The notes under the pieces were generated by a model that searched no databases, was not told the DNA's origin, and saw nothing but the letters and a program-made list of their open reading frames with translations. Below, one piece after another: positions 8,609 to 58,980 of a stretch of DNA of 64,000 nt (its first letter is position 1; each line of letters begins with the position of its first letter). The DNA comes from Macrostomum hystrix (taxonomy: Eukaryota > Animalia > Platyhelminthes). The stretch is taken from positions 3,348,001 through 3,412,000 of the forward strand of contig CATNEN010000031.1 in assembly GCA_950097015.1 (NCBI GenBank), written 5' to 3'. The position numbers and the translations under genes were made by a program.

Positions 8609-10212
8609 CTATCTGTCACTCTGGCGGCGCAGCATCCTCACTATCTGTCACTCTGGTAGGGCAGCAACCTCACTATCTGTCACTCTGGTAGGGCAGCAAC
8701 CTCACTATCTGTCACTCTGGTAGGGCAGCAACCTCACTATCTGTCACTCTGGCGGCGCAGCATCCTCACTATCTGTCACTCTGGTAGGGCAGCAACCTCA
8801 CTATCTGTCACTCTGGCGGCGCAGCATCCTCACTATCTGTCACTCTGGTAGGGCAGCAACCTCACTATCTGTCACTCTGGTAGGGCAGCAACCTCAATAT
8901 CTGTCCCTCTGGTAGGGCAGCAACCTCACTATCTGTCACTCTGGTAGGGCAGCAACCTCACTATCTGTCACTCTGGTAGGGCTGCAACCTCCATATCTGT
9001 CACTCTGGTAGGGCAGCAACCTCACTATCTGTCACTCTGGTAGGGCAGCAACCTCACTATCTGTCACTCTGGTAGGGCAGCAACCTCACTATCTGTCACT
9101 CTGGTAGGGCAGCAACCTCACTATCTGTCACTCTGGTAGGGCAGCAACCTCACTATCTGTCACTCTGGTAGGGCAGCAACCTCACTATCTGTCACTCTGG
9201 TAGGGCTGCAACCTCCATATCTGTCACTCTGGTAGGGCAGCAACCTCACTATCTGTCACTCTGGTAGGGCAGCAACCTAACTATCTGTCACTCTGGTAGG
9301 GCAGCAACCTCACTATCTGTCACTCTGGTAGGGCAGCAACCTCACTATCTGTCACTCTGGTAGGGCAGCAACCTCACTATCTGTCACTCTGGTAGGGCAG
9401 CAACCTCACTATCTGTCACTCTGGCGGCGCAGCATCCTCACTATCTGTCACTCTGGTAGGGCAGCAACCTCACTATCTGTCACTCTGGTAGGGCAGCAAC
9501 CTAACTATCTGTCACTCTGGTAGGGCAGCAACCTAACTATCTGTCACTCTGGTAGGGCAGCAACCTCACTATCTGTCACTCTGGTAGGGCAGCAACCTCA
9601 ATATCTGTCACTCTGGTAGGGCAGCAACCTCACTATCTGTCACTCTGGTAGGGCAGCAACCTCACTATCTGTCACTCTGGCGGCGCAGCAACCTCACTAT
9701 CTGTCACTCTGGTGGCGCAGCACCCTCACTATCTGTCACTCTGGTGGCGCAGCACCCTCACTATCTGTCACTCTGGCGGCGCAGCACCCTCACTATCTGT
9801 CACTCTGGCGGCGCAGCAACCTCACTATCTGTCACTCTGTACTCTGGTGGCGCAGCATCCTCTCTATCTGTCACTCTGTTGGCGCAGCATCCTCACTATC
9901 TGTCACTCTGGTGGCGCAGCATCCTCACTATCTGTCACTCTGGTGGCGCAGCATCCTCACTATCTGTCACTCTGGTGGCGCAGCATCCTCACTATCTGTC
10001 ACTCTGGTGGCGCAGCACCCTCACTATCTGTCACTCTGGTGGCGCAGCACCCTCACTATCTGACACTCTAGTGGCGCAGCATCCTCACTATCTGTCACTC
10101 TGGTGGCGCAGCACCCTCACTATCTGACACTCTGGTGGCGCAGCACCCTCACTATCTGACACTCTGGTGGCGCAGCATCCTCACTATCTGTCACTCTGGT
10201 GGCGCAGCACCC
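8609..10212. repeat. Minisatellite, 32-bp unit (CTATCTGTCACTCTGGTAGGGCAGCAACCTCA), ~50 copies
   Basis: Period 32 measured (8609 to 8641); variant tagggcagcaacc dominates the 5' part and tggcgcagcatcc the 3' part. Confidence 0.97.
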
Positions 10213-11925: not shown

Positions 11926-11952
11926 GTTAGGATCTCGAAGGGATTAGGATCT

Positions 11953-12138
11953 TTCTCATCGTCAGGCAGTGTACACTTCACTGTGCCTTGGAGGTTGGCC
12001 CTTAAGGGCGTAAATTGCACGACAAGCCCTCAAGCCTTCTCTCCGCGGCTGCGCCCCAAATAAATGTGGACTCGTCGTGGAATCGAACTTAGGGACCTTG
12101 GTGCGAGAGGCAAACGCTTTAACCGCTCTGCCACTGAC
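11953..12138 (-). mobile_element. tRNA-derived SINE, family A (3'-truncated copy)
   Basis: Minus strand has A-box TGGCAGAGCGG and B-box GTTCGATTC; the body matches copies at 32046 and 56410. Confidence 0.8.
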
Positions 12139-18731: not shown

Positions 18732-19643
18732 TCAGTCGTCGCCGAGGCCTCTGTCGTAAGCCTCCTGCTCCTCGGCCATTCGCTTGTGCTGCAAGAGAAT
18801 CATCTTCAGCTCGTCCTTGCCAATACCGCCGTCCTTGTCTGTGTCCCACTGCTCCATGATCACCTCCTTGAAGAACTTCATCTTCTGGTCATCAAACTCT
18901 TCGCCAGTGAGCTCCAGGAGGTCCTTGAGGAAGCCTTCCAGCTCATCGCCCTCGATCTTGCCACTCTTATCGGTGTCGTACTTGCGAAAGATTTTTTCAA
19001 TCTCGTAGGTGGACAGCCGGGCCGCATTCTTGAGCAGCGGCCTGCTCAGGTAGTTGTCCTTCACTGGCAGCAGCTTAGCCATCTCGCTGAGCTGCAGCTG
19101 GCCGTCTCCGTTCTTGTCGAACAGTTTCAGGATGGCGTCGGCGTACTCCGATAGTTTCTCTTCGCTCACCGAGGCCTCCTGGTGGCGCTCCTGCAGCAGG
19201 TAGCGCAGGAACTCCCTGAGCTCCTCCTTGTCAATCTGGCCCGAGTTGTCCTTGTCGAACTGCTTCCAGATGCGCATGAACTCCACACTGGACTCAAGCG
19301 GATTGTCCCGCCTGAACAGCAGCAGGAAGCTCTGGTCAGTCGGCAGCATCTGGGCCAGCTCGCCTATCTCGATGCGATTGTCTTCATTCTCATCGTAGGC
19401 CAGCATGAACTCCTCCTTCAGCTCCTTCAGCGCGCTGTCCGAGATCACCTCCTGACCAATCTGGTCCGGTATGATGGACGTCACGAACTCTTTGAGGAAG
19501 CCATCCAGCTCCTCATCCTCGATATAGCCGCTGCCATCCTTGTCATAGTGATTCCACACCTCAAGGAACTGCGCCGCGGTGAAGTTCTTGAAGGAGCGAG
19601 TGTCCTTGTCGCGAAATTTCTGCAAGAAGTTCTCATTTGACAT
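18732..19643 (-). CDS. Cbp53E: Calbindin/calretinin/secretagogin family hexa-EF-hand protein (Cbp53E/calbindin-32-like), single exon, 303 aa
   Basis: N-terminal FTAAQFLEVWNHYDKDGSGYIE and six EF loops (DKDGSGYIEDEE, DENEDNRIEIGE, DKDNSGQIDKEE, DKNGDGQLQLSE, DTDKSGKIEGDE, DTDKDGGIGKDE). ATG at 19643. Confidence 0.93.
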   Translation of the reverse strand: MSNENFLQKFRDKDTRSFKNFTAAQFLEVWNHYDKDGSGYIEDEELDGFLKEFVTSIIPDQIGQEVISDSALKELKEEFMLAYDENEDNRIEIGELAQMLPTDQSFLLLFRRDNPLESSVEFMRIWKQFDKDNSGQIDKEELREFLRYLLQERHQEASVSEEKLSEYADAILKLFDKNGDGQLQLSEMAKLLPVKDNYLSRPLLKNAARLSTYEIEKIFRKYDTDKSGKIEGDELEGFLKDLLELTGEEFDDQKMKFFKEVIMEQWDTDKDGGIGKDELKMILLQHKRMAEEQEAYDRGLGDD

Positions 19644-20854
19644 TGTTGCGCGCCGGTCTGCTGTCGGCAATGATTTTTTTTTTTCAGAATGGAATTCCTC
19701 CAGAATGGGATTGCTGTGAGCACGGCGCGTGAGACCCTGGCGGCTTTATTTGTCTCGGAGCGCGGCCGGAATGAGATTTTTTTAGAAAGGCGGACCGACA
19801 GTCCCTACCAGACGGCGGAGGGTCCCTAGCTTTCTAGTACGCTCTGGAGATCGATTTTATTGCCAATAAGCGACTCCCCCCCGACGGCCCAATCGTCTCG
19901 AGGCTTTATAAAATTTTCTTTTCCTCTTCCTCTTTCAGTCTTTCTTCCCCAGTGTCTGCTAGACCTGGACACTCCCTGCACCTTGGTGTGCCGAAGAAAT
20001 TGAATTTCCCGAATTGGCTATTGTATTGGCTCCTGTGAGCAGAGCTGAAAACTTTCAAACTGCCTTCCACCTACTAGTCAAGGAATTTTCGCATAGCTTT
20101 GCTATTATTCAACTAAAACTAGACAGTCAAAGCCAGTCGATAATTTTTTTGTTTCTAATGCCAAAGCAGTGACGGCGACCCCGGGACGCACCGAACAAAT
20201 TTGCCTTTATAGGTTTGGAAGATTTTTTCAACTGGAGCTTTTAGAAATCATAGAGCTTGACTGGTACAGGGGTAGTGCGGGGAGACAAGCTGATCAAATA
20301 TTGCCGGTATTCTCTCTACCTAATCTAAAGTACCAGAGGCTAAAGGCTTTAATCTTTAGCAACCGCTCTGCATTAACTTAAGTCGTAAAGCCTCGACAAT
20401 TTTCCGAGAATGGCATTGAAACAGCCCTCCAGGTCCACGTAGCGCTGGCACGGCTGTGAATCAATTACAAAACAGATGAACTGCACTTGACGCATTTTTT
20501 TATCAAATAAGGACTGAATGCATAGTGCAAGATTTTGTATTATATATAATATAAATTACTCATTCAAATTAACAATAAGCATGACGATACACAAAGATAA
20601 TAAAGTACCATCAAGTATAATAGCCGGAGATTCTAGTGGGTAAGAATGACAGATTTAATTAAGTCTACAATCCAAAATTGCCTTTATATGCTTTATATGA
20701 TGATTTATGGCCAATTTTCAAAATGCTGCCATTAATTGTTTATACTTGCATATAGAGGCCTCTATAGTTCCTTCACTGGGTTGCTCAAAATTTATTTCTC
20801 TTTACGATAAGTGAACAGCTTCAGTTGCAGCTACGTTGTATGTATGTTTCAGCT

Positions 20855-25446: not shown

Positions 25447-25752
25447 ATAATAATAATAATAATATATTACACCTGCCCTAATCAGGTCAATTGTGCAGCC
25501 GACAGCACAGCCGCAGCTATTGCGCGGCGCATCTGAAGGCTGCATATGGCTGTTCAGTCCATGGACTGGGGGGACGCCACACCCACCTTCAATTATCCCA
25601 GCTAATGCTGGTACCCATTTAACAGCTGGGTGAACTGAAGCAATGCAGAGTTAAGTGTCTTGCTAAAGGACACAAATTGTTTAAGTGGAGACGGGAATCG
25701 AACCCCCGACCTTCAAGTCGTGAGTCCGACGCCCTAACCACTAAGCTACAAC
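25447..25752 (-). mobile_element. tRNA-derived CORE-like SINE (family B), full length with (ATT)n tail
   Basis: Minus strand has B-box GGTTCGATTCCC, then tgtgtcctttagcaagacacttaactctgcattgcttcagttcacccagctgttaaatggg, which resembles the MIR CORE domain. Matches the 43833-44122 copy. Confidence 0.82.
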
Positions 25753-26049
25753 CTCACTGATTAACTACAGAGAGGCTACAGATAGACTACAAACTGATTT
25801 GCGTGAAGTACAGCGTTATACGAGTATATTATAATTCAATTTATTTGACATTGGATGGAACGAAAAAGAACATATAACACAGTGTACTGTATACTTGTGT
25901 TAACTCAAGAGTGCAGGATCGTGCACAAAAGCTTTTGTACACAGACGAGCCAATAGTGATTAGCTTATTTGCTATTTTAATCTAAATGATAATACTTGTC
26001 TTAAAGGGAATTAAATCCAATGAAATACAAATTGCTTCCTAAAATGAAG

Positions 26050-29400: not shown

Positions 29401-32400
29401 TCTCGAAGCGGACAAGGGCTTCGCCGTTGCGACGGCCGCCGGCTCGGCTTAGCACAAGGGCGACGCCACCCGGACTGACATTGAGGCCGCTGAAGAAGCT
29501 ACAGGCCACCTCGACGTCGCCCGCTTGCCAAGGCAGGCCACGCAGACGGACCACTGTCTCAGGACCGACCGGGTCCGTCTTCCGACTGACAGGTGGAACA
29601 GTGGGACTCGTTACAAAGTGACAAAGGCATTTGTGGCCGTCCTTGGAGCACACATCTTCTTGTCAAACATTTGATTACTTGTTCCAGGTTTCACTAATAA
29701 ATGAAACCATTTCCACTGAATGAATGTGGCGTAAACTTACACAAGAGCCGGGCGGTATTCCCTAGCTATCGATTCTGCTTGGTGGAACTTGTGACCTGCA
29801 ATTAAATTCAGCAAGTTTTACTAGTGAAAGGCCGATTACAAAAACGGAGAATAGACAGACAAAAACTAATAATTATTCACACCAACCATCAGCTAATAGG
29901 CAGCCAATGATTCGAGACATTGCCAGGCACTGTTCAGCGCTGAAACCTGTCAGCTGAGACTCTGCTACCTCAGACTCTACGGTCTGCTTTTGGCGCGGTT
30001 CCTGATGCAGACCGAGCTCTGTTAAATTGGATGTCAAAAATGTGCTTATCAAAGTATCCCGAACGCACTGGACCATATGAGCAGAAAATCAGAACGAAAT
30101 ACACTTTTTTGATACCACACTGAACCACATTAATGAAACCACAAAAACAGTACCAGACACCATAAACCATATCAGACCACATCAGACCACATCAGACAAC
30201 AACAGACCGCACCAGACCACACCAGACCACACTAGACCATATTAGACCACACCAGACCATATCAGACCCACACCAGACCGCACCAGACCACGCCAGACCA
30301 CACCAGACCGTATCAGACCACAACAGACCACACCAGACCACAACAGACCACAACAGACCACACCAGACCGCACCAGACCACACCAGACCACAACAGACCA
30401 CACCAGACCACGCCAGACCACACCAGACCACAACAGACCACACCAGACCACGCCAGACCACACCAGACCGTATCAGACCACAACAGACCACACCAGACCA
30501 CAACAGACCACAACAGAACGTATCAGACCTCACCAGACTACACCAGACCACAACAGACCACAACAGACCGCATCATATCAGGCAGAGGGACGGAAAACCA
30601 ACCAGCAAGCATCTCCTCCATCGTAGGCTGCGATTGCCTGCTGCGCCTAGCTCGAGCGAACTCCTTCCGCAGGTCGTGGAAGGCATAGAAATAGCCGGGC
30701 AGGCGAATCCCTTTAGCGGAGGCCTCCGGGTGCAGCAGGAGGCGCAGCGTCGCCTGGCCATCAGTGACTAGGTGGAGGTCGCGGCCGGTCTCGTCCGGGT
30801 GAGCATTAGCCAACAGTAGGGCTCGGTCAAGCTGGAAGGGCAATGCGAATACTTAGTACTTTTCCGTAAATTAGATAACCGATTTCACAAGCTTATTATC
30901 CTTTTTTGTTAAAGAATTAGAATCGAAATAGTATTGCTGGGGAATCAAATCGATAATCCATGAGAATCTAACCGATAATCCATGAGAATCTAACCGATAA
31001 TCCATGAGAATCTAACCGATAATCCACGAGAATCTAACCTATAAACCAAGTGAATCGAAACGATTTTCCAGGTGAAATCTAATCGACAAATCCATGAGAA
31101 TCTACCCGATAATCCATGAGAATCAACCCGATAATCCATGAGAATCTAACCGATAATCCACGAGAATCTATCTGATAATTCATGAGAATCTAACCGATAA
31201 TCCATGAGAATCTAACCGATAATTCATGAGAATCTAACCGATAATCCAGGTGATATCTAATCGATAATCCACGAGAATCTAACCGATAATCCATGAGAAT
31301 CTAACCGATAATCCATGAGAATCTAACCGATAATCCATGAGAATCTAACCGAAAACCTAGGTGAATCTAAGTTATAATTCCGAAATCAGAAGTTCTCACT
31401 GAAAATCAAATCCCAAAGGATTGTAAATAGTCTATGGGAATCCCAGATAGGCCCAAAAAAGTTGGCCACAGCCGCACCTCCAGCAGGCAGTCGGCCAGAG
31501 TCGCAGCCGAGTCCAACGACTCGTCCGTGATGCCGGTGGCCGCAGTGCACTCCGCTGACACCGCCGCTCTGCCGTCCTCCAACGTGGTCTCAACGACGCC
31601 TTCGAAAGCGTCAGCCCCGGCTGCTGGAAGTCCCGGCGGCAGCAGCGGCCTGACAGGATGCTGAGCCAGGGCCAGAACCTTCGAGATGTTCAATTCAAGG
31701 TTCGATTGAATGAACCTGCTTCCATAGTCAATATCGGGCCTCTTTAACAGTAGAAATACCACGCCATTTTTTTCCTCCTGGGGAAAGACCACTTCACAAT
31801 GGCTCCTAAACCGAATAATCGATTTTCGTGAAAGTCCAACATATGGATCAAAATTTTCCGCTTTTTACTATAAACTAATTTTCAAAGCATCGTCGTGATA
31901 TTCAGCTATTGTTTTAGAAGACCCTGGGGACAAGAGCAACGAACATTGCTCTTTATAAAATTCTATGGCGAATCCATGCTGGTTAGAAAATTAAAAAAAC
32001 TATTTAATCAATCCAAAAAAGTTTGCAATCATAGCCGACATGGTAGGGGGTCGGTGGCAGAGCGGTTAACGCGTTTGCCTCTCGCACCAAGGTCCCTAAG
32101 TTCGATTCCACGGCGAGGCCACATTTATTTGGGGCGCAGCCGCGGAGAGAAGGCTTTGGGGCTTGTCGTGCAATTGACGCCCTTGAGGGCCAACCTCCAA
32201 GACACAGTGAAGTGTACACTGCCTGACGATGAGAAAGTCAGGGCAGATGTACACACCTGTGTGAGCGTATGCCTGCGTACAGTATTTGTGTGCGTGTGTG
32301 CTCAGGAGTCAGCGGAATGGGCAGAATTGCCTCCTCGCTGGCTGCGGGTCTAGTGTCACTAAATGATGTGCCATTGCCCGCAGCCCTCCTGCAATTATTA

Positions 32401-43832: not shown

Positions 43833-44122
43833 AGGTTGTAGGCCTGTGGTTTAGAGTGTTGGACTGACGAATTGAAGATCATGGGTTCGATTCCCGACTC
43901 CACTGGAACAATTTGTGCTCTTTAGCAAGACACTTGACTCTGCAGTGCTTCAATTCACCCAGCTGTTAGTATGGGTACCAGCACTAGCTGGTGTAATTGA
44001 GGGTGGGTGTGGCGTCCCACCAGTCCATGGACTGAACAGCCGCACGCAGCCTTCAGATGCGCCGCGCAATAGCTGCGGCTGTGCTGTCCAATTGGGGCAG
44101 GTGTAAGCAATTATTATTATTT
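43833..44122 (+). mobile_element. tRNA-derived CORE-like SINE (family B), full length
   Basis: B-box GGTTCGATTCCC, CORE-like block, 3' tail attattattatt; preceded by a partial 3' duplicate at ~43775-43830. Confidence 0.82.
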
Positions 44123-44764: not shown

Positions 44765-44950
44765 TTTGCTTCGTACAGCCAATGGCACAAATAATGTGTA
44801 CAACTACTGTTCAATCCGTGGACTGGGGAGGCAGCCACAACCGCCTGGCACTTATCAGTTGGGTGAACTGAAGCTCTAGGAATATGAAGTGTGTATTGCT
44901 CACGGACACAAATTGCTCTCGACCAGAAGCTCTAATCACTTGGGCTACAG
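44765..44950 (-). mobile_element. Degenerate CORE-like SINE (family B) fragment
   Basis: ccgtggactgggg and ttgggtgaactgaagc...ggacacaaattg blocks shared with the 25447 copy. Confidence 0.6.
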
Positions 44951-44957
44951 ATCCTAG

Positions 44958-45239
44958 GATAATATAATAATAATTGCTGCGGGCTATGGCGTATCAGTTG
45001 GTGACAGTAGACCCGCAGCCAGCGAGGAGGCTATTCTGTTCGCTGACTCCTGAGCAGCGGGCACACACGCACACAGATACTGTACGCAGGCATACGCTCA
45101 CACGGGTATGTTCATATGCCCTGACTTTCGCATCGGTCAGGCAGTGTGCACTCTTACTGTGCCTTGGAAGTTGGCCCTCAAGGGCCTAAATTTCACGACA
45201 AGCCCACGAGCCTTCTCCTTGCGGCTGCACCCCAAATAA
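44958..45239 (-). mobile_element. SINE family A, 3' part (5' head continues at 53630-53703), split by the CACTA insertion
   Basis: Joining 45239 to 53632 restores ccccaaataaatgtggcctcgccgcggaatcgagc, as in the intact copies at 12055 and 56675. Confidence 0.9.
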
Positions 45240-45665
45240 CCCGCCTGGCCTTTTTAGTCCGGAAAACAAGAAAATAGCCCGGTGGTTGTTCCGGTGCTTC
45301 ATCCGGTACGTAATGCATTTTTCCCATTTAAAAAACCGGACGAAAACCGGAGTATAGTTAACAAAACGGACCAACGCGTGAAAATTTTGGCCTTTCGTCC
45401 GGTTGACTGTCCGGTGTTGGTCCGGAAATTCATCCAGAGTGCAGTCCGGCTTTGGCCGATAATCGGAGCAAATTCCGGACGAAAACCGGACGACCGTACC
45501 TGACAGTAAAACCGGATCAGTTTCCGGACTAGTTTCCGGATAAAATCCGGACGAATATACCTGACAGTAAAACCGGATCAGTTTCCGGACTAGTTTCCGG
45601 ATAAAATCCGGACGAATATACCTGACAGTGAAACCGGACCAGTTTCCGGGTACGTTACCGGACGA
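45240..45665. repeat. Left TIR and CCGG(A)-rich subterminal repeats, including a ~61-bp tandem duplication
   Basis: Dense tccgga/accgga motifs in both orientations. Confidence 0.9.
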
Positions 45666-45916
45666 AAGGTGCCAGAAATTTCATACTATTCTAAGCAGGT
45701 TCATACGACGCATATTTATATGCATATGAAATGTATCCGTTGTATGGAGAATAGTTGCCTCGTATTCTAAATTTTCTGGTGCTTTCAGCCTACTCACGAT
45801 GCATAAAAACTTTGAAGATATAATCGATGAGAACATCCCTGTTTCGTCATTAGCTAAGTGCAAAGTGCAAAGTGCAAAGTAGCACTCTCTGCGCACAAAA
45901 CATTTATTCTGCACGA

Positions 45917-46120
45917 TCGAAACTCTGCACGAACACAATGGAACACGATCGAAACTCTGCACGAACACACAGTCAGGGAGAGTCCAGTCAGGGACTTTAC
46001 ACAGTGCACCAACTGTGCACGAACACTATGGAACACGATCGAAACTCTGCACGAACACACAGTCAGGGAGAGTCCAGTCAGGGACTTTACACAGTGCACC
46101 AGCTGTGCACGAACACTATA
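45917..46120. repeat. 90-bp tandem duplication inside the transposon, 3' of the BEN gene
   Basis: 30-aa periodicity in ORFs 45858-46141. Confidence 0.85.
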
Positions 46121-46236
46121 TCTCAGGGCCTAAAGAGCTAGTAAAAATAAATTTGCTGCCTATACTGTCTATAATTAAAGTGAATTTGGCGAAATTGAAG
46201 CAGTTTGTCGCCTTCGTGTCCTTCGGGACGAACAGA

Positions 46237-48268
46237 CTAGGTTGCGTCCTTCTGCAGCAAGTTCGCCATGAAGTCGTCCTGCACATCCCCAAGAAGACTG
46301 CCTAGCACTTGACTGCCTCCGGCGACTGCAGCAGCTTCGGCGGCAGCCGATCCGGCGACATCAGCAGTGGCTCCAGCGGCTGCAGCAGTGGCTCCGGCGG
46401 CTGCAGCAGCTCCGGCAGCAGCCGATCCGGCGACATCAGCAGTGGCTCCGGCGGCTGCAGCAGCTCCGGCGGCAGCCGATCCGGCGACGTTACTGGCTCT
46501 GGCGGATCTGGAAGGCTTCTGCGTCGACGACTGCTTCGGACGCGGGGCTGCCTTGTCGCAATTCTTTGATCGCACGTGCTTCGGTAGACCCAGGCGCTGC
46601 CGGGCAGTTTCACCGCAGCGCGTAAATGCCCGACGCAGCTGGCGGTCGTTGAAAGCCACATTGCTGCTGCGCAGCCACTCTTTAGCGGCTGCCAGCTTAC
46701 CAGGATTCGCGGGCGTAGACACAGCCGGGCGTCTTGCGCCCGGAGATGGTTGAGTGGGCCAACTCCTGCTCCGTAAAGAGGGCCCTGAACAGGGCTCTTA
46801 GTACGGCCAATTTGGCGAAATGGCCATTATCACTTTGCGGTGCATCGATATCGACGGATGGCTTCGAGGCTTCGCGGAAGTCCTCGAGCCGCTGGTCTAG
46901 CTGAATTCGCGACGAGGATGACACCTTGACAAAGTTTTGTGAATCCGACAGGCTGACGAGACAGGCGTCTGTGTTGGATGAATGTCCTGCATCGGTATGC
47001 GAGCTGGCCTTGTGGCAGGCAGCCACCAAAGCTCGCGTCTGCGAAGCGGACAGGGTACCGTGGGCCATAAATTCGGATTCTAAATTCGATTCGTCGCCGG
47101 TGTTCGCGCTGTCGTCTTCGTCCGCGTCCTGCTGTGACCTGGACACTGAAGCATTGTTTTTGCAGCCGGCTGCGAGAATCTGCGAGGCGCTGACCAAATG
47201 CGAGTTGGCGTTAGCTGCCGTTCGCTGCAGTGCAACGCATTTGGCCTCCGCAGCCTCAACTTGTCGCAGCAGTTTGGCCTCCATTTTCGACGAAACCGTG
47301 ATTTTTTGCTCCAGATCTCGACAAGCCTCCTTCAGGTGAGCGGCCTCGGCGCGTGTCTTCCGGAGTTGAGTGCCTAAATGAAATCATATGACGTACTTTG
47401 TCTGAAGAACGTAAGTTAAGCACTTTGAATTCGCACAGCCTGTACCTGCATAACCTAGCTGCATCTCGATCTGCAGCCTTCTTCCCTGTTTCTCCCCGTT
47501 AGTCCCCAAAGTCTTACCCAGAGTTTCTGAAAGCGACGCGGCCCTTTGCAGCTCGAGCTGCAGTCCCCTACAGGACTGGCAGGAGCGTGGCAGCTCAACG
47601 GGCTGCGAGTGGACGTTTGTTAATTTGGCTGCTCCCATAGCTGCAGCTTTGTCTTCGAAAGGTCCTCGCACGAGTGTGCCCCGGTAACGCCGAGCCGATT
47701 TGCGGTTTGTTTTAGCGGTGACGATGAGTACGACGCTGCCGAGTTCAACTGGGACGGGGGAATCGCGCTTACGAGCCACGATGAGTGGCGTTGAAGTGGC
47801 CCCGTCGGTACCCACGACCTCCGTACGTTCGTGGTAATTCTCATACTGGAAAAGAAAATAGCGAGCTCGGTTCTCCGCCTTGTACGGTTCCATGTCTACC
47901 ATGCAGGGTGCCACGTCAAACGAGGGGTTTAAATTCTCTTCGTCCCCGATCTCATCGTCACGGGCAGTTCCATTGCCTGAAGTCCCTGGTCTGTCACCCG
48001 CATTCGCAAGATGAGCTCGATCAGAAATTAGCATTACGCGCTTCTTCGTTGGAGGAGGTGGCGGGGGAGGGGGTTCAGACACGACCGATGACCGTGCGGC
48101 ATCGTCTGTTGGCACCGCTCCCGTCAGCTCCGAAGTGCCTGGTTTGCGCTTCTCAGGTTTGCGCTTCTCAGGTTTGCGCTTCGCTTCTGAGATCTCAGAA
48201 CGACGTTTTCGGTGTTTGCTCTGTTCTGCTTCTTTCATTTCTTTCAATACTTTTCTGTCGCGCCCCAT
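46237..48268 (-). CDS. Transposon accessory gene: basic NLS-like region + beta-rich domain + coiled coil + C-terminal BEN domain; join(48268..47455,47373..46237) with one frameshift at ~46723, ~650 aa if restored
   Basis: In-phase intron (LQIEMQL-GTQLRKTRAEAAHLKEACRDLEQK). BEN-like LFRALFTEQELAHSTISG...NPGKLAAAKEWL...RQLRRAFTRC. A 2-bp loss in a TG run shifts the frame. Confidence 0.72.
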
Positions 48269-48611
48269 TTTTCAGCGCTGATAGATCTGAAGGAGGGGAA
48301 ATGAATTATCATATTGTTTTGCTCAAAGTGGCGTCTCCGAGAAATGAGTATCCTTGTGAAAGGATGAAGGTTTTAAATGGAGGTAAGTCTGAAAGACCGA
48401 AAGCCTTAATCCCGAGATCAAGCCGTTAAACTGGTTCGGAGGTGAAATATATTTAGTCTCGTAGATGTTCACCTTAGTCTGCAACTAAAAGCGCCGATTG
48501 TCAACCAACAAATAAATTCATTTAAGTGATCACTTCGTCGAAACTTCGTGATATTTTTAAAGTGATATTTTCGAACATATTGATATATCAATCCATATAT
48601 GGAAGACAGAT

Positions 48612-49448
48612 TCAGGTTTTCGGGCTGCGATGCTGCAAATCTCGCAGCGGCCGTCTGCGTCGGCGCAGTGGCCGCATGGCCTCGATGGGTGCATCCGGTG
48701 GGGTGGGGGGCATGTCTATTGCCCAGAACTGGGCGTCGTGATTCAGCTTCGGCTGGTTGCTTCTATGTCTGCCCGCCAGCTGCAGACGCTTTCTACGGCT
48801 GTCGGGTGACATACCTGCATACCAGCCTTCACACTCCGGGCAGCAATGGGCCTCCAGTTCCATTCGGTCGGCTTGTCGGCGGCAGACGTACACGCTCGCT
48901 GGACCGGCGGCCTTCTTCTCTGGAAGCCGGTTGTAGTCAGCTTTCATTTCTGCCGCTGACTTTCCAAAGAAAAGGCCACCTGGTCGGCCGACGAACACAA
49001 GGTCTCCAGCAGCAGCTCCGGCGGCAGCCGATCCGGCGACATCAGCAGGGGCTCCGGTGACTGCAGCAGCTCCGGCGGCATCAGCAGGGGCTCCAATGGC
49101 AGCATCAGACGGAACGTTGTCTGAGCCGTCGTCTAAATGCAGGGGTCCGGACCATTGGCCAGTGGATGCCGCCAATGGACGCCGGGGCGTCACGCTTTCG
49201 GCCTGATGCTGCAGATTCGGCCATGCGCCTGACATTACCTGCGTTGATGGTAGCTCGTCTGAAGCGCAAAGTGCTCGGTGGTATCGCAAAGCCAAACTGG
49301 AGTGAAAAACAGGCGACGTCGGTCGACTCTGGCTGCCTTCGCGAAGCCGGTGCAGCTCGGCCCGCAGCATCTTGTTGTCTTCAGATAACGCGGTACAGAC
49401 TGGGCAACTAGCGGCGTGCGTCCAGTGGTCCTTTGTGGCTGGCGTGGA
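48612..49448 (-). CDS. Transposon-borne CtIP/Sae2 (SAE2 C-terminal domain)-like protein, at least 278 aa; short first exon upstream not fixed
   Basis: CRRQADRMELEAHCCPECEGWYAGMSPDSRRKRLQLAGRHRSNQPKLNHDAQFWAIDMPPT aligns without gaps to the CtIP C-terminus as I recall it ([61 protein letters not shown]). N-terminal CPVC plus short coiled coil after acceptor ttttcag. Confidence 0.85.
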   Translation of the reverse strand, partial: STPATKDHWTHAASCPVCTALSEDNKMLRAELHRLREGSQSRPTSPVFHSSLALRYHRALCASDELPSTQVMSGAWPNLQHQAESVTPRRPLAASTGQWSGPLHLDDGSDNVPSDAAIGAPADAAGAAAVTGAPADVAGSAAAGAAAGDLVFVGRPGGLFFGKSAAEMKADYNRLPEKKAAGPASVYVCRRQADRMELEAHCCPECEGWYAGMSPDSRRKRLQLAGRHRSNQPKLNHDAQFWAIDMPPTPPDAPIEAMRPLRRRRRPLRDLQHRSPKT

Positions 49449-49984
49449 CTGAAAATAGAAGGTCTTCTATATAGAGCCGAAGTATATTTTCTACACACGT
49501 CAGAGTATTGATGTGAGACGTGAGCTCAACATTTTCTGGGAATTTGAGTTTGATTAGGGTGTGGATTCTGGTGGCAACGTATGGAATGGATTATGCGACA
49601 CGGGAAGAACCGTCCATGGCCATGAATCGAAGTTGTAATAGTTTCAAATCGAGGAGCGCAGTTTATTTTGTTTTAGTACTACGTACACACGACATCCAGC
49701 AAATGAAGTAATTACAGACAGCCAACATGATGATTATAAAAAATAACATTACCGCTACATGGGAAAACGTGACTAATAATTGGGCATAATTAAGCATCCT
49801 CTTAATTCGTGCTGCAGTGTAAAAAAGTTAGTTTAAAGCAACAGAAAACTGTATCCAGACAGCGATATAACAGGAAATGTGAATCGGGAGACTCTTGACG
49901 CATTGGGCTTCAATGTCTACTGAGAGCGGTGCTAGGGAAGTGTGTATGAGCAGGGAGCGTGCTATGAGAAGAAAGGAAACAGAG

Positions 49985-52733
49985 TCAGTGGTAATTGAGC
50001 TGCGAATAGGGTAGCAGCGCGATTTTACCAGCCGTCAATACACACGATCCGACAATATCACGCACAGGCACACGGGATGCGTTCCAGGTTGTCGCAGGGC
50101 CGAACGGATTGCCCAGAAGCCGGCGCACGTGAGCGAAGCGACAACCGCGCTCTTCTGTCGTCGCACGCACACGACACAGCGACTCTAGTGGTTCGAAATA
50201 GTCGTCTTCTACGGGGAGTATGTCGACCGTCATCTCCACGTCCTCACCGTCGACATTGATAGCAGCCACACGTGCAAATGCGAACGATGTCTGGTCAAAC
50301 TGTCGTTTAATGGCTACAAAGCTGCTGCACGATCGTCTGCACTTCTCGTTGTCCGCATCCAATTCTGGATTGAAGACTTCGACCTCGAAGCCGGACTGCA
50401 GTGTGGCTGTCTGCCAGCCATCGACCATATGTTTAGGTCGCTTCAGAACAACATTGCCGCAGACGATTGACTCTGTGAGCATCGCACGCATCTGGCCACC
50501 GAGTTCTGCATTGTCGCCAAAAGTAGAGGCCTGCGCCTGAATGGCAGCAAACTCGCGTTCAATTGCGCCGACCAATTCGATGTCTGTCCGGCGGGTCCCA
50601 TGCAGTTGGTCTCTCAGTCGAACGTGCATTGACTCAAAGAGACCAGCCGACAGCCTGTGCAGTGGCCCGGCGAGCAACACGGAGGGCAGCATATGGCAAC
50701 AAACTTGATGCGCATTGTAAGTCAGGGCTCTTAGAGAGTACAACCGCGGCAAGTTGGCATGGAAATGCCTGAGAGACGTCTCCACGTGACGCAGCTCGGA
50801 CTTCGGCGCGCTATCAAGGCACATCCAGAAGACGGCAGAGGACAGGATCAGCAGGTGCCAATAGTGTTCGTCGGGTAGAAACTCCTCGAGAACTAAAGGT
50901 GCGTTGGCCAGAATGTAGATAGCCAGTTCGTGACCCCGAAGGTGCCGGACGTCAGTCAGTCCTCGGACATTATGGCGCTGAACACAGCGGGGCACTCGAA
51001 TGAGATCCATTCTCGTCTTAATGACCCTTATGCGAGCATGCAAATCGGGACAATTAGTCGGACCCTTGTCTGGTTTTTCAGCGCGCACAAGGAATAGTTG
51101 AAATAGCATGTAGCGCACAAGACCAGAGCAGAGTTGATGAAGAAAACATGGCGGGGTTCCCCGTATGATGTCGAAACCGTACAAGCGAGTAAGTGGCGAA
51201 CATCCGCGCACGCCCAATGTATCGGTTAGAAACGTGCGTCCTTGCTGAGCATGATACTCAGCCAAATGCTGGGTGTCATGCGCCGAGCGTACTACCGTCT
51301 GTTCACAGCCTAGGCGACGCGCATCATTCTGCATAGCAGGCGTGATGTCAACGTCGTAGACGCGACCAGAGCGGGATGGGTGCAGAGCTGTTCGAATATA
51401 GCATTTGTCGCAGCCATACGTTGCGGAGAAACGTCTCAGACTCAGAGCGTCGGCACGCGCGGGTGCGTCAAACATAGCAATTAGTGTGTGTACACGTAGA
51501 CGCCGTCGAACGTTGTGGCTGTCGATGAACTGGATGCCATCAATACGAAGAGCATTTAACTTATCCACCACGATCGGCATAAACGCCGCAGGATGTAGCT
51601 TCTTCTTTGAGACATAGGCGGCTACCTTCATCACAAACCGCAGTTTAAATGGATCTGCTATTTCGTTTATGCTAAGATAGACAGGGTAGACCTCAGTGCA
51701 GCTGGTCGTACGCAAGGGAAAGCCGTCTCCACAGATCATTCCAGAGAGATCGCTGCGACTTCCCGGGTCTATGCCCTCAACAAAGACCTTATACAGTTCG
51801 CTGTTCACCATGTGGATTGTTTCGGTACTGACTTGCTGGTCAATAGGAAAGGTGGCATGCTCCAACAACTGGCGGTGCAATACCAGTGTCCGTAGCTGTC
51901 TCTGGACGTCGAAGTCCCAGAAGTTGCCGATGTTTACCGATCCACATTGGGGGCACTGATCCCGTTCGGAGTCGCATTGTTGGCCAGGAAAATTCGAGTG
52001 ACAGTCGTTGCACACTGTCGAGCACCTCGAACTGTGCATAACTGACTGCGCCGATGAAATGGCTTCGCGGGCTGCTCGACCACCTTTGGGCAACGCGTTT
52101 CCGGGAACCAAACGGTGCAGCAGACGCAAAATTCTGGTCACGCCACCACGGGATACTTTCAGGTCGGTGGCGCATGACAGGATCTCGCTAAGCGCCTCTC
52201 CAACGGTTCGTGGCAGTGCGGGATGCCAGGGACGCAGCAACTTGACATCGAGTGCATGTTCATCTTCGTGAGCAGCGTCGTCGCCTTCAAAGAGAAGAAA
52301 TGTTGGTAGCGATTTTGTGCCTCATCGTATTCTGTCACAGAGTGCTAATAATGGCCTGTTGTTACGTTGGTATACCACACTTACCAGCTTCACCGTCATC
52401 GGATTCGGAGTCGCCCTCCTCGGAGGTCTCGCTGCGCTTGTTAGCGTCGGCGTCATCGTCAGTGTCAGCGGGGCTGACATCAGAGTCGCCCTCGTCGGAG
52501 GTATCGCTGTGCCTGTCAGCGTCAGCGGGGCTGGCATCAGAGTCGCCCTCGTCGGAGGTATCGCTGTGCCTGTCAGCGTCAGCGGGGCTGGCATCAGAGT
52601 CGCCCTCGTCGGATGTCCTCCTACGCCCGTCACATAGAGGAGAGCGTGAGCATCTGTTAAGGCGAGCCTGAACGCGCTTGCGGTTCATGTACCTGCGCAT
52701 GTAGAGGCGAGGATGTAGGGACGAGTCTTCCAT
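49985..52733 (-). CDS. CACTA/EnSpm DDE transposase (Transposase_21-like); join(52733..52385,52284..49985), 882 aa, uninterrupted
   Basis: D1 in ICGDGFP..YPVYLSINEI; D2 in MFDAPARA...GCDKC; H-x4-H in YNAHQVCCH; E in SAGLFESM. N-terminal Cys cluster CNDC...CPQC. GT-AG phase-1 intron. Confidence 0.93.
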
Positions 52734-53129
52734 TGCCTTTTTATTTCTTTTACGAGTCTTCCATTGCCTTTTTATTTCTTTTACTCCGGCAGCTGATTTC
52801 TTGGTATACGCTGAAACATGTTATTATACATAGATTTCTAAGACGGAATACTAGACTTGTAAAAATTTGTAATGCTCTAAGCTGTACCCTTAGGTTGGTA
52901 CCCTGAAACCTTTTTATCTGTTCATACCCATGTCTTTATAGCCACAATTTGGAGATTAAGCGTATATCTAGGTGACTGAGAAAGGAAGCGAATAATACGA
53001 ATTTTTGCTAGTCACTGTGATTACAGAGACTATAGTGATGAAATTTTTCACAGCGTTTAAATTTATTTGTGATTAAATTTATGACAGCCATTACAGTGAT
53101 TACATTTTGTGACACTGATGAGGCGGATG

Positions 53130-53629
53130 GTTTTACCGGACAGGAATTAGACGCATCTAAAATGTAGTCCTTTAGCCATAGTTATATTTGGCTGTTCACC
53201 ACGGACATCAGTTTGTGATTAAATCATTCTGCTGTACAGCATTGCTTAACAGGGATTACTGCCGCTCTTTGTCCGGTTCCCGCTCCTGCTTTTATCCGGT
53301 TGAGTGCGTACGAATCACCGGAAGAGAAAGCGGACCACTTTCCGGGCAAAATTCGATCTTCATCCGGAGTTAATCCGGATCTGAGCCCGGTTCTTGTACG
53401 TTTTTTGGACAGACAAGCAACCGGAAAAAAATTCGGATGAAAACCGGACTAAAATCACTAACATTAGGCCACTTTATCCGGTTTTGGTCCGTAAAGTGGT
53501 CCGCTTATTTGCCGGATACTTAAAACCGGAGCGAAACCGGACGAAATTCTGGTTCATCCGGAAATACCCCCCAAAACGGATTATTCCGGACCAAATCCGG
53601 ATGAAATCCGGACCAAAAAGCCAGGCGGG
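53130..53629. repeat. Right CCGG(A)-rich subterminal repeats and TIR
   Basis: Dense tccgga/accgga motifs ending in ccaaaaagccaggcggg. Confidence 0.9.
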
Positions 53630-53723
53630 AAATGTGGCCTCGCCGCGGAATCGAGCTCAGCAACCTCGGTGCGAGAGGCATACGCGTCAACCGCTGTGCC
53701 ACCCAACCCCTAACACCCTCCAG

Positions 53724-56408
53724 CGTGCAGAACCGGCGAGGCCAAGGTGACCAAAGGCTACCGCCTGCCAGCCCGTTTCGTCATTCACACTGTCGGGCCG
53801 CGCTACAACGCCAAATACCGCACTGCGGCTGAGAGCGCATTGTACAACAGCACCCGGGCTGTGCTGGAACAGGTGCTAGAGTGCGGCGTTGACACGCTGG
53901 GCTTCTCGCCGATTCACACCAGCAAGCGCGGCTACCCGCCGGAGGAGGGCGCCCACCTCACCCTCCGCTGCCTTCGCCGCTTCCTGGAGCGCCACGGTCA
54001 CGGCCTCAGCCGGCTGGTCGTGTCCACCGGCGGTCCGAATGGCGCCTGCTATGCGGAGCTGGCCGCTCTGTACTTTCCCCGCTCTAATGCCGAATTGTGC
54101 AAATCGCAGGCTGCTCTGGCTGGGACCAGCCTGGGCGGCCCGATGGGCGAGCCAGTGCACAAGGGTAGGGGCATTCGCATCGCCGCTAACCCGCTGGGCG
54201 AGCAATGGTAGGTTGACTGTCCCCGCTACAGACTGACTACTTATAGTCGAGCGCAAGACATTTTATTTGTTTTCTGAGGGTTGGCCCTCATAGGCATAAA
54301 CTGCACGACAAGCCCCGTGTCTTCTCTTCGCAAATGCGCCCCAAGATCTGATAAATTTTTTTGAGATTTTAGTTGCTCAGATGGGGATCTGAGTGGGCTG
54401 TTTGGGATTCTAGTTGTCAATCTGGGATCTGAGTGGACTGTTTAGGATTTTAGTTGTCAATCTGGGATCTGAGTGGGCTGTTTGGGATTCTAGTTGTCAA
54501 TCTGGGATCTGAGTGGACTGTTTAGGATTTTAGTTGTCAATCTGGGATCTGAGTGGACTGTTTAGGATTTTAGTTGTCAATCTGGGATCTGAGTGGGCTG
54601 TTTGGGATTCTAGTTGTCAATCTGGGATCTGAGTGGACTGTTTAGGATTTTAGTTGTCAATCTGGGATCTGAGTGGACTGTTTAGGATTTTAGTTGTCAA
54701 TCTGGGATCTGAGTGGGCTGTTTGGGATTCTAGTTGTCAATCTGGGATCTGAGTGGACTGTTTGGGATTTTAGTTGTCAATCTGGGAATCTGAGTCGGCT
54801 GTTCGGGATTCTAGTTTTCTGGTGGAAGAACATGATTCAAAAAGCGCTCCTTTTTACCACAGTGACAGCTCCCGCGAGTCTAGCCCGTCGCCGCCGCCCT
54901 CCGACGCAATCGGCGGGCCCGACGACGACTCCGCCCCGGTGGCAGCCGTGGCCGCAACCGCATTTTTCGACCCGGAATTTCGCGGTAGTCAGCGGGACTC
55001 CTCGCTATCTGTGTCCGGCGTTGGCTCGCACGCCTTCGCCCGCATGGAGCAGCACCCGGATAGCGACGCCAGTAGGCGGAAGAAGCGCCAGATTGGCGCC
55101 GATGCGCGCCAACCTACTGACGTAATTCGCGCTGATCGCCTATTGGCTTGCGAGCGCCGCTACGATCGCTGGCTGCAGCGGGCCAGGTGAGAGTCCGCAT
55201 GATTGCATCAGCTAGTCACAATTCCCTATCCTGTAACCATGATTCAGATTTCTCCCTGATCAGGATTCGATCTCCAGACCACTGGTGCTATTATTCCACA
55301 GGCAGCAGATCCGCAGTTCAGCAGAGAATCTCAGCCGACTGCACGCAGCTCGCTGCCTATTCCACAGCGGCCACGACATCCACGGCAGGCCAGTGATAGT
55401 GGCCATCGGCTCCCGGATGCCGCCGCAGTCAGAGCGCAACTACGAAGACCTGGCTCTGCTGGTCTTGGGCGTACTCGAGCCGTTGATCAGCCAGCCCTAT
55501 GTGGTGCTGTACGCCCACTGCGGCTACGATGCGCTGCCGCATACCGCCTTTCTTAAGGTCAGAAACTCATTTCAAACAGCACCATCGGATCCGTAGCTTA
55601 ACAACTGAAATCCCAAACATCCCAGTAAGATCCGTAGCTTAACAACTGAAATCCCAAACAGCACCATCGGATCCGTAGCTTAACAACTGAAATCCCAAAC
55701 AGCACCATCGGATCCGTAGCTTAACAACTAAAATCCCAAACAACACCATCGGATCCGTAGCTTAACAACTGAAATCCCAAACATCCCAGTAAGATCCGTA
55801 GCTTAACAACTGAAATCCCAAACATCCCAGTAAGATCCGTAGCTTAACAACTGAAATCCCAAACATCCCAGTAAGATCCGTAGCTTAACAACTGAAATCC
55901 CAAAAAGCCCTCTCAGATCCCTAGTTTAACAACTGAAATCCCAAAAGGCCCTCTCAGATCCCTAGTTTAACAACTGAAATCCCAAAAAGCCCTCTCAGAT
56001 CCCTAGTTTAACAACTAAAATCCCAAAGAGCCCTCTTATATCCCCAAATTGACAACTGCGATCCCAAACAACCCGCGCCAGAACTGTACAATTATTTTAT
56101 ACGAAAGTGTGTACACAAATCTTCTTCAAGTGCTTCAGTGAGTTTGTATAAAAACCTGAGAATAAAAGTCCCAACCAATGAAGGAGCTTCGCGACCTGCT
56201 CACTGGCGAGCCGCGCTGGGGGGCCAACCTGGCCTGCCTCATCCATCTGCACGCAGACCGGCGAACTCGCCTTTTTTGGTGGTGGTTCGCCAGGTTCACG
56301 GCGGCCGGCCTCAACCAGCAATTCGCCGACTGCCTGCAGGACATCTTCCATCTGGTTGGGCCGGACCAGCTGGACTTGCCCGACTCCGTGTACGAGCTCG
56401 ACCGGCGG
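53724..56408 (+). CDS. GDAP2: GDAP2 exons 3-6: 53724..54207, 54863..55186, ~55302..55557, 56184..56408 (possible last exon from 57545)
   Basis: CRTGEAKVTKGYRLPARFVIHTVGPRYNAKYRTAAESALY...RGYPPEEGAH (macro domain); SHAFARME; CRAL-TRIO-like GHDIHGRPVIV...PYVVLYAH and PDQLDLPDSVYELD. Confidence 0.92.
54360..54815. repeat. Minisatellite, 40-bp unit (alternating A/B variants), GDAP2 intron 3
   Basis: tctgggatctgagtggactgtttaggattttagttgtcaa x ~11. Confidence 0.95.
55575..56065. repeat. Minisatellite, 41-bp unit, GDAP2 intron 5; reverse-complement relative of the intron 3 array
   Basis: aacaactgaaatcccaaa(a/c)agccctctcagatcc versus reverse complement of the intron 3 unit gacaactagaatcccaaacagcccactcagatcc. 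Confidence 0.92.
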
Positions 56409-56409
56409 G

Positions 56410-56760
56410 TAATAATAATAATAATGATAATAATTGCAGCAGGGCTGTAGGCAATGGTACATAACATCATTTTGTGACAGTAGACCCGCACCCAGCGAGG
56501 AGGCAATTCTGCCCATTTCGCTGACTCCTGAGCACACACAGATACTGTACGCATGCACGCATACGCTCACGCATTTCTCATCGTCAGGCAGTGTACACTC
56601 TGTGCCTTGGAAGTTTGCCCTTTAAGGGCGTAAATTTTACGACATGCCCACGAGCCTTCTCACCGCGGCTGCGCCCCAAATGAATGTGGCCTCGCCGCGG
56701 AATCGAGCTCAGGGACCTCGGGGCGAGAGGCAAACGCGTTAGACTGCTCTGCCACTCACC
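56410..56760 (-). mobile_element. SINE family A, full length
   Basis: Same head, body and (ATT)n tail as the 32046 copy. Confidence 0.87.
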
Positions 56761-58980
56761 CTGCTTAGGTTGTAGCCTAGGGGGTTGAAGCCAGTGGTTA
56801 GTGCATCAAACATACGACTTAAAGTTCGGTGGTTCTATTTCCGGAGCCAGTCAGTTTTTATTTTTAATGCATTACATTTTTAGGTTGCCAAGGAGACTAA
56901 AAGCGTCGGGCCTGTTGGAAAATTGTCGAATGCTGGGCCGGACGATCGCAGTTCAGCTCCAGATGAAGCCCTTTAAACTTTTACCAGTGACTCAGTGCTG
57001 ATTTGAAATCGATACTTAAGTAGGCCACAGAATTCAGACTTGTTTTTTACGTTTAATTTGCATAATTGCATATAAGTACTCCAGCCAGCCTTGATCTTGA
57101 GCCTTGATCTCCCTGTGATTAAATTTCCACTATTCAGTTATTCTTTGTAATAGCATACATTTATTGTTCTTTTTAAAACAAATTTAAAGATAATTTTGTT
57201 CCGGCATTCCACTGTTGGCTTTTTATTCGCTGAAAACGTAATTCTTTAATTCGGCAGTATATTGAACTCTTATGCATGCTCGCGTGTGACTTTCATTTTA
57301 TAAGAAAATCTAGATTTATATTTTTATTTTAAGCGCACTTCAAAATGAAATACAAGTACTTCAAATAGACTAAGACATATAGATTTTTTAGTTCATTAGA
57401 ACATACATAAACCAAAAATTATTTACTCGCTAAACTGGACTACTTAGTTTAAGTATACAAAAACATGTTTTATTTTGTACTGTTGCATGTAACTGCACCA
57501 AATCTTAGCAATACAAGCTGTTAATACTTTTTTACGTTTTTCAGGCCAATCGCGATTATAGAGGTGCTATGGATTCCATACTTTATATGATGAAAATTTC
57601 CCAGACATATTGCTAAACAACAAAACATTAAAGCCACTTGCTATCAAGAATGTGTTGAACAATATGTGATACAAATATTCATCACCTACAATTTGGTAGT
57701 TTCGAATTGAAACTTTCGCAGAGAAACAATTACATCTGATGTCGTGTTTGATAGCATGTATAATAACAACGTGATGCGATTTTGACGGTGTAATTAAGGG
57801 ATTTTTTTTTCTTACAAAAAGTTTTTTTACAGTTATTCTTCACGCATAATTCCTTTTCCGGGATAAAGCACAGAAACATAATACAAAAGACTTAATGCGT
57901 CATAAATTCAGAGATACGAGTACTTCCCAGAACCTGCGTAGGGCTGCGCTGCTCACACTTAGGCGAGGCGAAGGCAAAAGCATCGCGCACATTCGTAAAT
58001 ATGACTTAAGGCACGGCTTCTGACCAGCACAATATAATGTCAATACAGTGTACTATTTAAAAAGTTCATTTTTCCGAATTTTTGTCGCAGCATACTGACC
58101 AGTTAGCATCATTTTGATATGGTATGTCTAATAGTATATTTTTTAGAAAACACTGACTCGTCAATTGCAGTCTCCAGTCGGAAAACAAATGCGATTGTAG
58201 ATACGAAATGTATGCTTAAAATGTAGAGTAATAAAGTTTTTTTAAGTCTTCTTTAAAAGTAAATGAAAACTATGATTCTTGAATAGGCTTATAAGCATTA
58301 ATTACTTGAATTGAATAAACAGTGCACAAACGTATTTGGTAAAAAAAATACTGTAGTTAAAGGAGCTAGATTTGATTGTGTGCTTGTATTTAAAATAAAA
58401 AGATTTTTTGTGAGAAAAAATACATGTAGGCCCTATACTAAGCCGAGCTCTTATTGCTTTTTGGAACTTGGTTTTATACTGACGTTTTATCTTGGAAAGT
58501 TAACAACTTAAAAATATAAGAAATAAGAATACGGCACGCAATTTTATAATACACACTAACAGCGTTTAAGAAGCATGTGTAACCAATAAGCATTGGTTAT
58601 GTATTAATAGATTGTTTAAGCCTTTTAGTCAGTATATTAACTTACTTTAAGAAATTAAAGTGAAAACGAATATCTAAAAATGGAAGTTCTAAGGTCGTTT
58701 TAAGGTGGCAACAGCTAGTGCTTTCTCATGTCATGAGTCTCGTGGTCATGACATTAGTAGGCCTACCAAAGAAGCACCACATTTCTAACACTGGTACACT
58801 TCCCCTTCTCCTTTTAATTGCTCCTATAATCCCATAATAGCCCCTCCCCTAGCTCTTGAATGGTTCCCTAATTACGCACTGCAATATTTTAATTAAGGCC
58901 TAGCCTAGGCCCCTATCTGAAATAAAATGTAAATCAACAAGTTAGGCCTAAGACAAAATAGGCTTAGACAATTTGTAATA

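Follow-up and report, generated by a model that had tools for sequence, protein, structure and literature searches.

A CtIP/Sae2-like gene carried within a CMC-clade DNA transposon of Macrostomum hystrix

The element and its genes

We analysed a window of 64,000 nucleotides of the Macrostomum hystrix genome (contig CATNEN010000031.1, positions 3,348,001 to 3,412,000; coordinates below are those of the window), in which a DNA transposon carries a gene whose product ends in a CtIP/Sae2-type domain. The element (45240–53629), 8.4 kb long, belongs to the CMC (EnSpm/Mirage/Chapaev) clade of DNA transposons and is young and essentially complete; its lineage is marked by CCCGC termini, CCGG subterminal repeats and 2-bp target-site duplications (TSDs). 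Its three genes, a transposase of two exons, the CtIP-like gene and an accessory gene of two exons, were all encoded on the minus strand, with the CtIP-like gene between the other two (Table 1). The open reading frame (ORF) of the CtIP-like gene was open from stop to stop over 284 codons (48615–49466, minus strand) and lay 536 bp past the transposase stop codon. An earlier note, made from the letters of the sequence, had described an intact exon of at least 278 codons here, inside the terminal inverted repeats (TIRs), 3' of the transposase and on the same strand. This description was borne out, as was the location inside a transposon, since the ORF is bracketed by TIRs, TSD and an empty site.

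The termini of the element read CCCGCCTGGC(C)TTTTT(A/G)GTCCGGA, so that it runs as CCCGCCTGGC...GCCAGGCGGG (CCCGCC...GGCGGG) from end to end. No further copies of the TIR were found in the window. Uninterrupted paralogous sites were present in the window near 12063, 32125 and 56683. Because the two flanks of the element overlapped by exactly 2 bp on these three repeat copies, the TSD was identified as AA, and the reconstructed empty site reads ...CCCCAAATAAATGTGG... Contigs of independent DNA runs broke precisely at 45239/45240. The insertion lies in a very high-copy repeat resembling a short interspersed nuclear element (SINE), with a summed contig depth of about 5e5 in run X4, compared with 234 for the element. 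This SINE-like repeat flanked the element at 44900–45239 and 53630–53780, and further copies occurred near 11951–12134, 32041–32272 and 56574–56761. Just outside the element (54345–56070), two blocks of ~41-nt tandem units were opposed as long inverted repeats. A second element nested around the CtIP-like gene was considered and rejected, as no inverted repeats flanked 48300–49900.

Searches with the transposase as a single sequence and as a two-sequence profile found one relative, protein P0001, encoded on the Tara Oceans contig L001. A metagenome contig scan with the transposase alignment gave no confirmed relative, and a tblastn search of a phage collection gave no match. D172, D258, C277-x2-C280, H511-x4-H516 and E536 were invariant between the transposase and P0001, their catalytic assignment being by position and not by structure. 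The pattern D..D..C(2)C..H(4)H..E is the signature of CMC(T) transposases (PMC12730594). The nearest neighbours of the transposase in a protein language model were Transposase_21 (PF02992) clusters of arthropods, rotifers and cnidarians (scores 0.97–0.98). The label CACTA, which the element had been given at first, applied in a loose sense only. Like CMC/EnSpm (CACTA) elements, it has the motifs of the clade, a short TSD of 2 bp (class range 2–5 bp), subterminal repeats and several genes on one strand. It differs from them in its CCCGCC...GGCGGG termini, which are not of the CACTA or CA..TG type, in having a single sequence relative among those searched, and in the absence of any Pfam match at an expectation value (E) ≤1, Transposase_21 included, for either the transposase or P0001.

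The first exon of the accessory gene (ORF2) had its ATG 20 nt behind an AG preceded by a pyrimidine tract, and the second exon (ORF3a and ORF3b) contained an Ala/Gly-rich repeat at 46328–46497. A BEN domain in this gene was considered and rejected, as there was no Pfam match for it. All five variants of ORF2 (47384–48268) seen across sequencing runs were non-synonymous, compared with about half synonymous in the transposase, numbers that are too small to interpret.

Table 1. Features of the transposon and of its CtIP-like gene
Feature	Position	Strand	Basis or remark
Left TSD copy (AA)	45238..45239		2-bp overlap of the flanks at three empty paralogous sites
Left TIR, CCCGCCTGGCC TTTTT A GTCCGGA	45240..45263	+	22/24 match to right end, one 1-nt gap
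3' subterminal region, (T)CCGG(A) repeats, 61-nt and 90-nt tandem units	45264..46236		Repeat families
Accessory gene exon 2 (ORF3a + ORF3b)	46237..47284	-	Homologous to a single ORF, L001:8575-9342
Accessory gene exon 1 (ORF2, 294 aa)	47384..48268	-	32% identical to L001:7509-8237
CtIP/Sae2-like gene	48612..49448	-	CPVC at residues 15–18, helix 22–37, stop 48612–48614
Part coding for the SAE2/CtIP C-terminal domain	48615..48941	-	CxxC, RHR, F-W, PPTP, basic tail; pLDDT 70–93
Ala/Gly-rich repeat in the CtIP-like ORF, common to ORF3b	49009..49103	-	Nucleotide identity
Candidate 3' splice or trans-splice acceptor, ttctattttcag	49449..49480	-	Overlaps TATA-like box and Inr-like TCAGTCC
Transposase exon 2	49985..52284	-	Stop at 49985; 44% identical to P0001 over 98% of length
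Transposase intron (inferred, 100 nt, GT-AG)	52285..52384	-	GTAAGT donor and tttcttctctttgaag acceptor restore the frame
Transposase exon 1	52385..52733	-	ATG at 52733 or 52700; acidic 57-nt repeats
5' subterminal region, (T)CCGG(A) repeats	52734..53605		Repeat analysis
Right TIR	53606..53629	-	Match to left TIR
Right TSD copy (AA)	53630..53631		Empty paralogous sites

The CtIP-like gene and its C-terminal domain

The CtIP-like ORF ends in a TGA stop codon (48612–48614), and two models of the gene can be read from the sequence. In the first, a coding exon of 278 codons, joined by splicing or trans-splicing, would begin at 49448, right behind a polypyrimidine tract and the AG (49450–49449) of the candidate acceptor ttctattttcag. 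In the second, the gene would have its own promoter and start at the earliest ATG (49370, Met27), giving a protein of 252 aa; the 30 nt upstream also read as a TATA-like box (tatatag) followed by an initiator (Inr)-like TCAGTCC. In Macrostomum lignano trans-splicing affects many mRNAs, and about 7% of the transcripts in the assembly represent polycistronic precursors (PMC5730564). One idea is that the strong AG acceptors just ahead of the CtIP-like ORF and of the ORF2 ATG could be sites of leader addition on one long transcript of the element. The GC content of the CtIP-like ORF was coding-like (0.60–0.62), compared with 0.37–0.41 in the two flanking intergenic stretches. Its product consists of a unique part (residues 1–112), an Ala/Gly repeat (residues 113–160) and the SAE2 domain (residues ~170–275). 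The Ala/Gly repeat had 94% nucleotide identity over 72 nt to 46403–46474 in ORF3b, which points to sequence exchange inside the element.

The last ~105 residues of the CtIP-like ORF are a genuine CtIP/Sae2 C-terminal domain. The Pfam profile SAE2 (PF08573) matched with 20.5 bits, above the curated cut-off of 19.8 (E 1.1e-3). A second profile, built from 12 other CtIP tails with the window sequence left out, matched this ORF as the only one among the 699 ORFs of the window, with 112 bits (E 6e-34) over profile positions 4–109. In an alignment of 13 sequences, every invariant column was kept in the CtIP-like protein (R..R..L, CxxC, the H-R of RHR and the Phe of F-W), and C203/C206, R227-H228-R229 and F241-W242 stood in invariant or nearly invariant columns of the CtIP family. 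The Thr of its PPTP motif aligned with the second conserved Thr of the family (Sae2 T279, CtIP T859), an equivalence by alignment alone. The domain had been claimed in the earlier note from its conserved residues, with a HMMER search against Pfam SAE2 proposed as the check, and both profile matches confirmed it.

Homologues were found with phmmer among 1.84 billion cluster representatives, where 28 proteins matched at E ≤1e-3, all of them only to query residues ~130–272. Among them were oyster and catfish RBBP8 as well as Ctp1-domain proteins from hagfish and pearl oyster. Of ten matches scanned with Pfam, nine gave any Pfam match, and PF08573 was present in all nine; one additionally carried CtIP_N. 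The best homologue was PAA54340 of M. lignano, with 53% identity over 102 ungapped residues (E 2e-32). All neighbours of the CtIP-like protein in the protein language model were SAE2 clusters (scores 0.85–0.89). The AlphaFold2 model was mostly disordered, with a predicted template modelling score (pTM) of 0.26, a helix at residues 22–37 with a predicted local distance difference test (pLDDT) value of ~63, and residues 170–270 with pLDDT 70–93. A Foldseek search with this model ranked RBBP8 first to fifth but with E 0.07–0.24, which is not significant and was given no evidential weight. A sequence search of solved structures gave no match. Nor did a word-indexed search of proteins, which the Ala/Gly repeat of the ORF had probably swamped. 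A metagenome contig scan with the CtIP subfamily alignment gave no confirmed relative.

A stand-alone SAE2-like ORF of ~130 codons was also seen on the Logan contig L003 (positions 524–910; SRR31628425). At the position of the nearly invariant Trp of F-W it has an in-frame TGA, after which the matching tail continues. This ORF is either a pseudogene or from an organism that reads TGA as Trp.

The N-terminus was less clearly of the CtIP type. CPVC (residues 15–18) followed by the helix at residues 22–37 was present, as expected from the earlier description of the protein as a miniature CtIP. Residues 1–112, in contrast, showed no significant similarity to CtIP N-termini (P0030 and P0003 were compared) and scored 0.74 in the protein language model, and Pfam CtIP_N did not match the protein. 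The term 'miniature CtIP' thus describes a shape, and N-terminal homology is unproven. Two other origins of the CPVC and helix at the start were tried and rejected: a duplicate of the CxxC and coil at the end of ORF2, for which the scores were within the shuffle range, and a degenerate repeat of the CxxC-RHR core of the SAE2 domain, which was not significant (−1.1 bits, E 0.14). Overall, the protein resembles CtIP/RBBP8, Sae2, Ctp1 and COM1 in R..R..L, CxxC, RHR, F-W, the second Thr and the basic tail, and in having the SAE2 domain at the extreme C-terminus, a disordered middle and an N-terminal helix. It differs from CtIP, Sae2 and Ctp1 in its size of just 252–278 aa, in the lack of a recognisable CtIP_N or tetramerisation domain and in being encoded in a transposon, not at a host locus.

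Origin, copies and expression

P0001 was encoded on a 10.2-kb contig (L001) that contained a complete element at 97–10043. This marine element had 33-nt TIRs beginning with CCCGC (CCCGCTG...) and CCGG repeats as in the window element, and it carried homologues of the transposase, ORF2 and ORF3. No SAE2-like sequence was found in the 995 bp between its transposase and ORF2, nor elsewhere on the contig. The CtIP-like gene was therefore added within the lineage of the window element and is not ancestral to the family. It is host-derived and was placed between the transposase and the accessory gene after the split from the marine relative.

In M. lignano, PAA54340 and its paralogue PAA88737 (Mlig004387) have introns and are flanked by acetyl-CoA synthetase (ACAS) and EMP24 genes at two homeologous loci, which fit the duplicated genome of that species (PMC5730564). 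The N-terminal coiled coil of the longer paralogue matched that of a metagenomic mini-CtIP (E 0.001). We read Mlig004387 as the host CtIP-type gene of M. lignano. It has HCCP.CE.W, GRHR.NQ, MPPTP.PAP and an RR.RPLR tail in common with the window ORF and differs from it in being a host gene with introns and a longer N-terminal coiled coil. The possibility that the window ORF was the single host CtIP orthologue, raised when the gene was first noticed, was contradicted by this separate, syntenic host-type gene in M. lignano. There was no DNA similarity between the CtIP-like ORF and the M. lignano gene in a blastn comparison, and DNA run X4 had one contig only over 48500–48899 at ≥85% identity. 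The capture was therefore not recent, or the donor was another lineage. Since its acquisition the CtIP-like ORF has diverged (53% protein identity) yet keeps an open frame, its natural C-terminus and every family-invariant residue. Separately, a ~300-bp interspersed repeat (25448–25753 and 43834–44088) was 80–85% identical to copies in M. lignano introns (L002, L004), and the GC content was similar, as would fit a host that is Macrostomum or closely related to it.

Independent assemblies under three organism labels shared the order ORF3-ORF2-CtIP-transposase; in runs that bear the labels of two other organisms it lay on single contigs, at 99.8% identity. Differences from the window element numbered 7 in 4.2 kb in run X3 and 5 in 2.6 kb in run X4. 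Four wastewater metatranscriptomes (X6, X8, X9 and X10) contained contigs of 99% identity that covered ORF2, 49009–49509 and the transposase (47300–52723 overall). Wastewater metatranscriptomes are an odd place for a Macrostomum-type element; either a host lives there or the contigs are carry-over.

Extra genes are known from other cut-and-paste elements, such as TET/JBP genes in fungal EnSpm, Plavaka and KDZ elements (PMC12730594) and a His-Me endonuclease in KolobokP (PMC9587614). Like these, the window element is autonomous and has, beside its transposase, an additional gene that is specific to the lineage and absent in some relatives; it differs in that its cargo is a cofactor domain of double-strand-break repair. 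No paper that connects CtIP/Sae2 domains with transposon cargo turned up in searches of the full-text literature, in agreement with the earlier note, which knew of no such report. The SAE2 cargo is real and apparently unreported, and its function is unproven.

Possible roles of the CtIP-like gene

Cut-and-paste transposons rely on double-strand-break repair by the host, both for survival of the host and for gains in copy number, and the choice of pathway is believed to rest with the host. Our preferred reading, to which we give about an even chance, is that the host-derived CtIP-like gene has been kept on this CMC-clade element as useful to it, through processing of donor ends driven by the MRE11-RAD50-NBS1 (MRN) complex. 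Such processing after excision would be the most likely use of the gene. The protein would bind RAD50 in MRE11-RAD50(-NBS1) by its Sae2-type tail and would promote endonucleolytic clipping of the donor-site ends left by the transposase, which could be hairpin-capped or protein-bound. The clipped break would then be resected and repaired, possibly off the sister copy. The Sae2/CtIP tail is known to contact Rad50 and to license Mre11 cutting of hairpin or protein-blocked ends (PMC11662671), and the CMC clade has motifs in common with the hairpin-forming Transib/RAG1 (PMC12730594). Because its cyclin-dependent kinase (CDK) site is replaced by His-Asp, the protein may act free of cell-cycle licensing. 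A bolder form of this proposal strikes us as unlikely: here the transposon would bring its own repair-pathway switch, a small CtIP independent of CDK licensing that docks on RAD50 and has MRE11 clip hairpin-capped or transposase-bound donor ends, with resection, copying from the sister, restoration of the donor and a rise in copy number to follow.

Several observations weigh against a use in donor-end processing. Hairpin formation is not known for CMC transposases. Just ahead of F-W, the CtIP-like protein has His-Asp where ten aligned metazoan CtIPs show Thr-Pro; this is the CDK site (T847 in human CtIP, S267 in yeast Sae2) that is required for activation of MRN and of its yeast counterpart MRX (PMC7261161, PMC11662671). 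No oligomerisation (tetramerisation) domain was recognisable in the protein. A mini-CtIP made of the human N-terminus and tail, without residues 165–790, loses NBS1 binding and stimulates MRN weakly (PMC7261161). The marine relative on L001 manages without the gene.

Variation and expression gave the donor-end proposal little help either. Five variants of the CtIP-like ORF were found across runs, three synonymous (codons 16, 71 and 98) and two non-synonymous (H33L, D252E), which are too few for a selection signal. In a second form in run X4 (depth 93 of about 230), the 92 bases at 49390–49481 were replaced by 3 letters; this short form keeps Met27 but has lost the AG acceptor and TATA-like box along with the codons for CPVC. 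None of the contigs of the wastewater RNA runs covered 48300–49008, and the runs listed for the SAE2 part included no RNA run; the contigs break at 49009 because of the repeat shared with ORF3b. The RNA-run contigs passed unspliced through the transposase intron with no joints seen, and may be DNA or pre-mRNA. Finally, a frameshift near 46718 splits ORF3a and ORF3b in the window copy. In runs X3 and X4 they are joined into a single frame, as in L001, by 2 additional letters after 46718, together with a C>T change at 46722, so that the window has either a frameshifted copy or an assembly error.

Several of these observations would also fit a gene of no service to the element, the end of a CtIP gene having been picked up by transduplication and its intactness reflecting the youth of the copies. 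We consider such a neutral passenger somewhat doubtful and at the same time a serious possibility. With 99.8% identity between runs, the copies are very young; a complete marine relative does without the gene, and the gene is a mosaic with a repeat in common with ORF3b. The unseen transcript of the SAE2 part, the lost CDK site and the uninformative ratio of variants point the same way. The domain is, however, distant from any known CtIP: protein identity is 53% at most, the DNA shows no similarity to the M. lignano gene, and run X4 has no second contig at ≥85% identity. Despite this distance all invariant residues, the natural stop and the 284-codon frame were kept. Such retention is hard to explain under neutral drift, unless the donor was an unsampled gene that had already diverged. 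Pack-CACTA and Pack-MULE capture (PMC6379663) likewise yields host-derived sequence between CMC-type TIRs with a mosaic make-up. The window element differs from the Pack type in being autonomous in build, with a transposase of its own, and in an intact ORF that runs to its natural stop and is strongly diverged from known parents; neither the lack of a transposase nor a fragment near its parent DNA, by which Pack-type elements are recognised, was found here, the parent DNA having been sought in the contigs of run X4 and in the M. lignano gene.

The main functional rival to end processing is a decoy or inhibitor, suggested by the absence of the CDK site and of any NBS1-binding region; we judge it to be quite improbable. 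The tail would then bind MRE11-RAD50 without activating it and either protect transposition intermediates or divert the empty site towards repair by end joining. The replacement of Thr-Pro by His-Asp would fit such a protein, as non-phosphorylatable sae2-S267A is defective in MRX activation (PMC11662671), and so would the loss of NBS1 binding and poor MRN stimulation of the human mini-CtIP described above (PMC7261161). On the other hand, the host-type gene of M. lignano is also without the Thr-Pro CDK site, so its loss may be a trait of the lineage and not specific to the transposon. In addition, the Asp adjoins the aligned CDK site, and phosphomimetic S267E is active in yeast (PMC11662671); the second conserved Thr, equivalent to T859, is kept. 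A last alternative, a host gene, nested foreign insertion or assembly artefact only seeming to lie inside the element, was considered owing to the repeat-rich neighbourhood, found no support and is very improbable, with TIRs, TSD and empty site bracketing the gene and the ORF3-ORF2-CtIP-transposase order present on single contigs of independent runs.

If the CtIP-like gene does act in donor-end processing, the element would be a natural case of a transposon that tunes end processing by MRE11-RAD50. As a compact CtIP variant of about 250 aa without the CDK site, the protein can be used to test the effect of the tail alone on MRN. The cargo also gives indirect access to the question of how CMC transposases cleave DNA, with hairpins or without. 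Should the gene be a passenger only, the element would still provide a clean and datable instance of an autonomous animal DNA transposon that has captured a gene.

Two features of the window lie far from the element. Positions 1–2000 are occupied by a C-rich satellite, with a GC skew of −0.68, whose units are roughly 20 nt long (CAATCACATTCC...). An ORF on the minus strand at 18732–19670 contains four EF-hand motifs (Pfam E 5e-34) and is probably an exon of a host calcium-binding protein.

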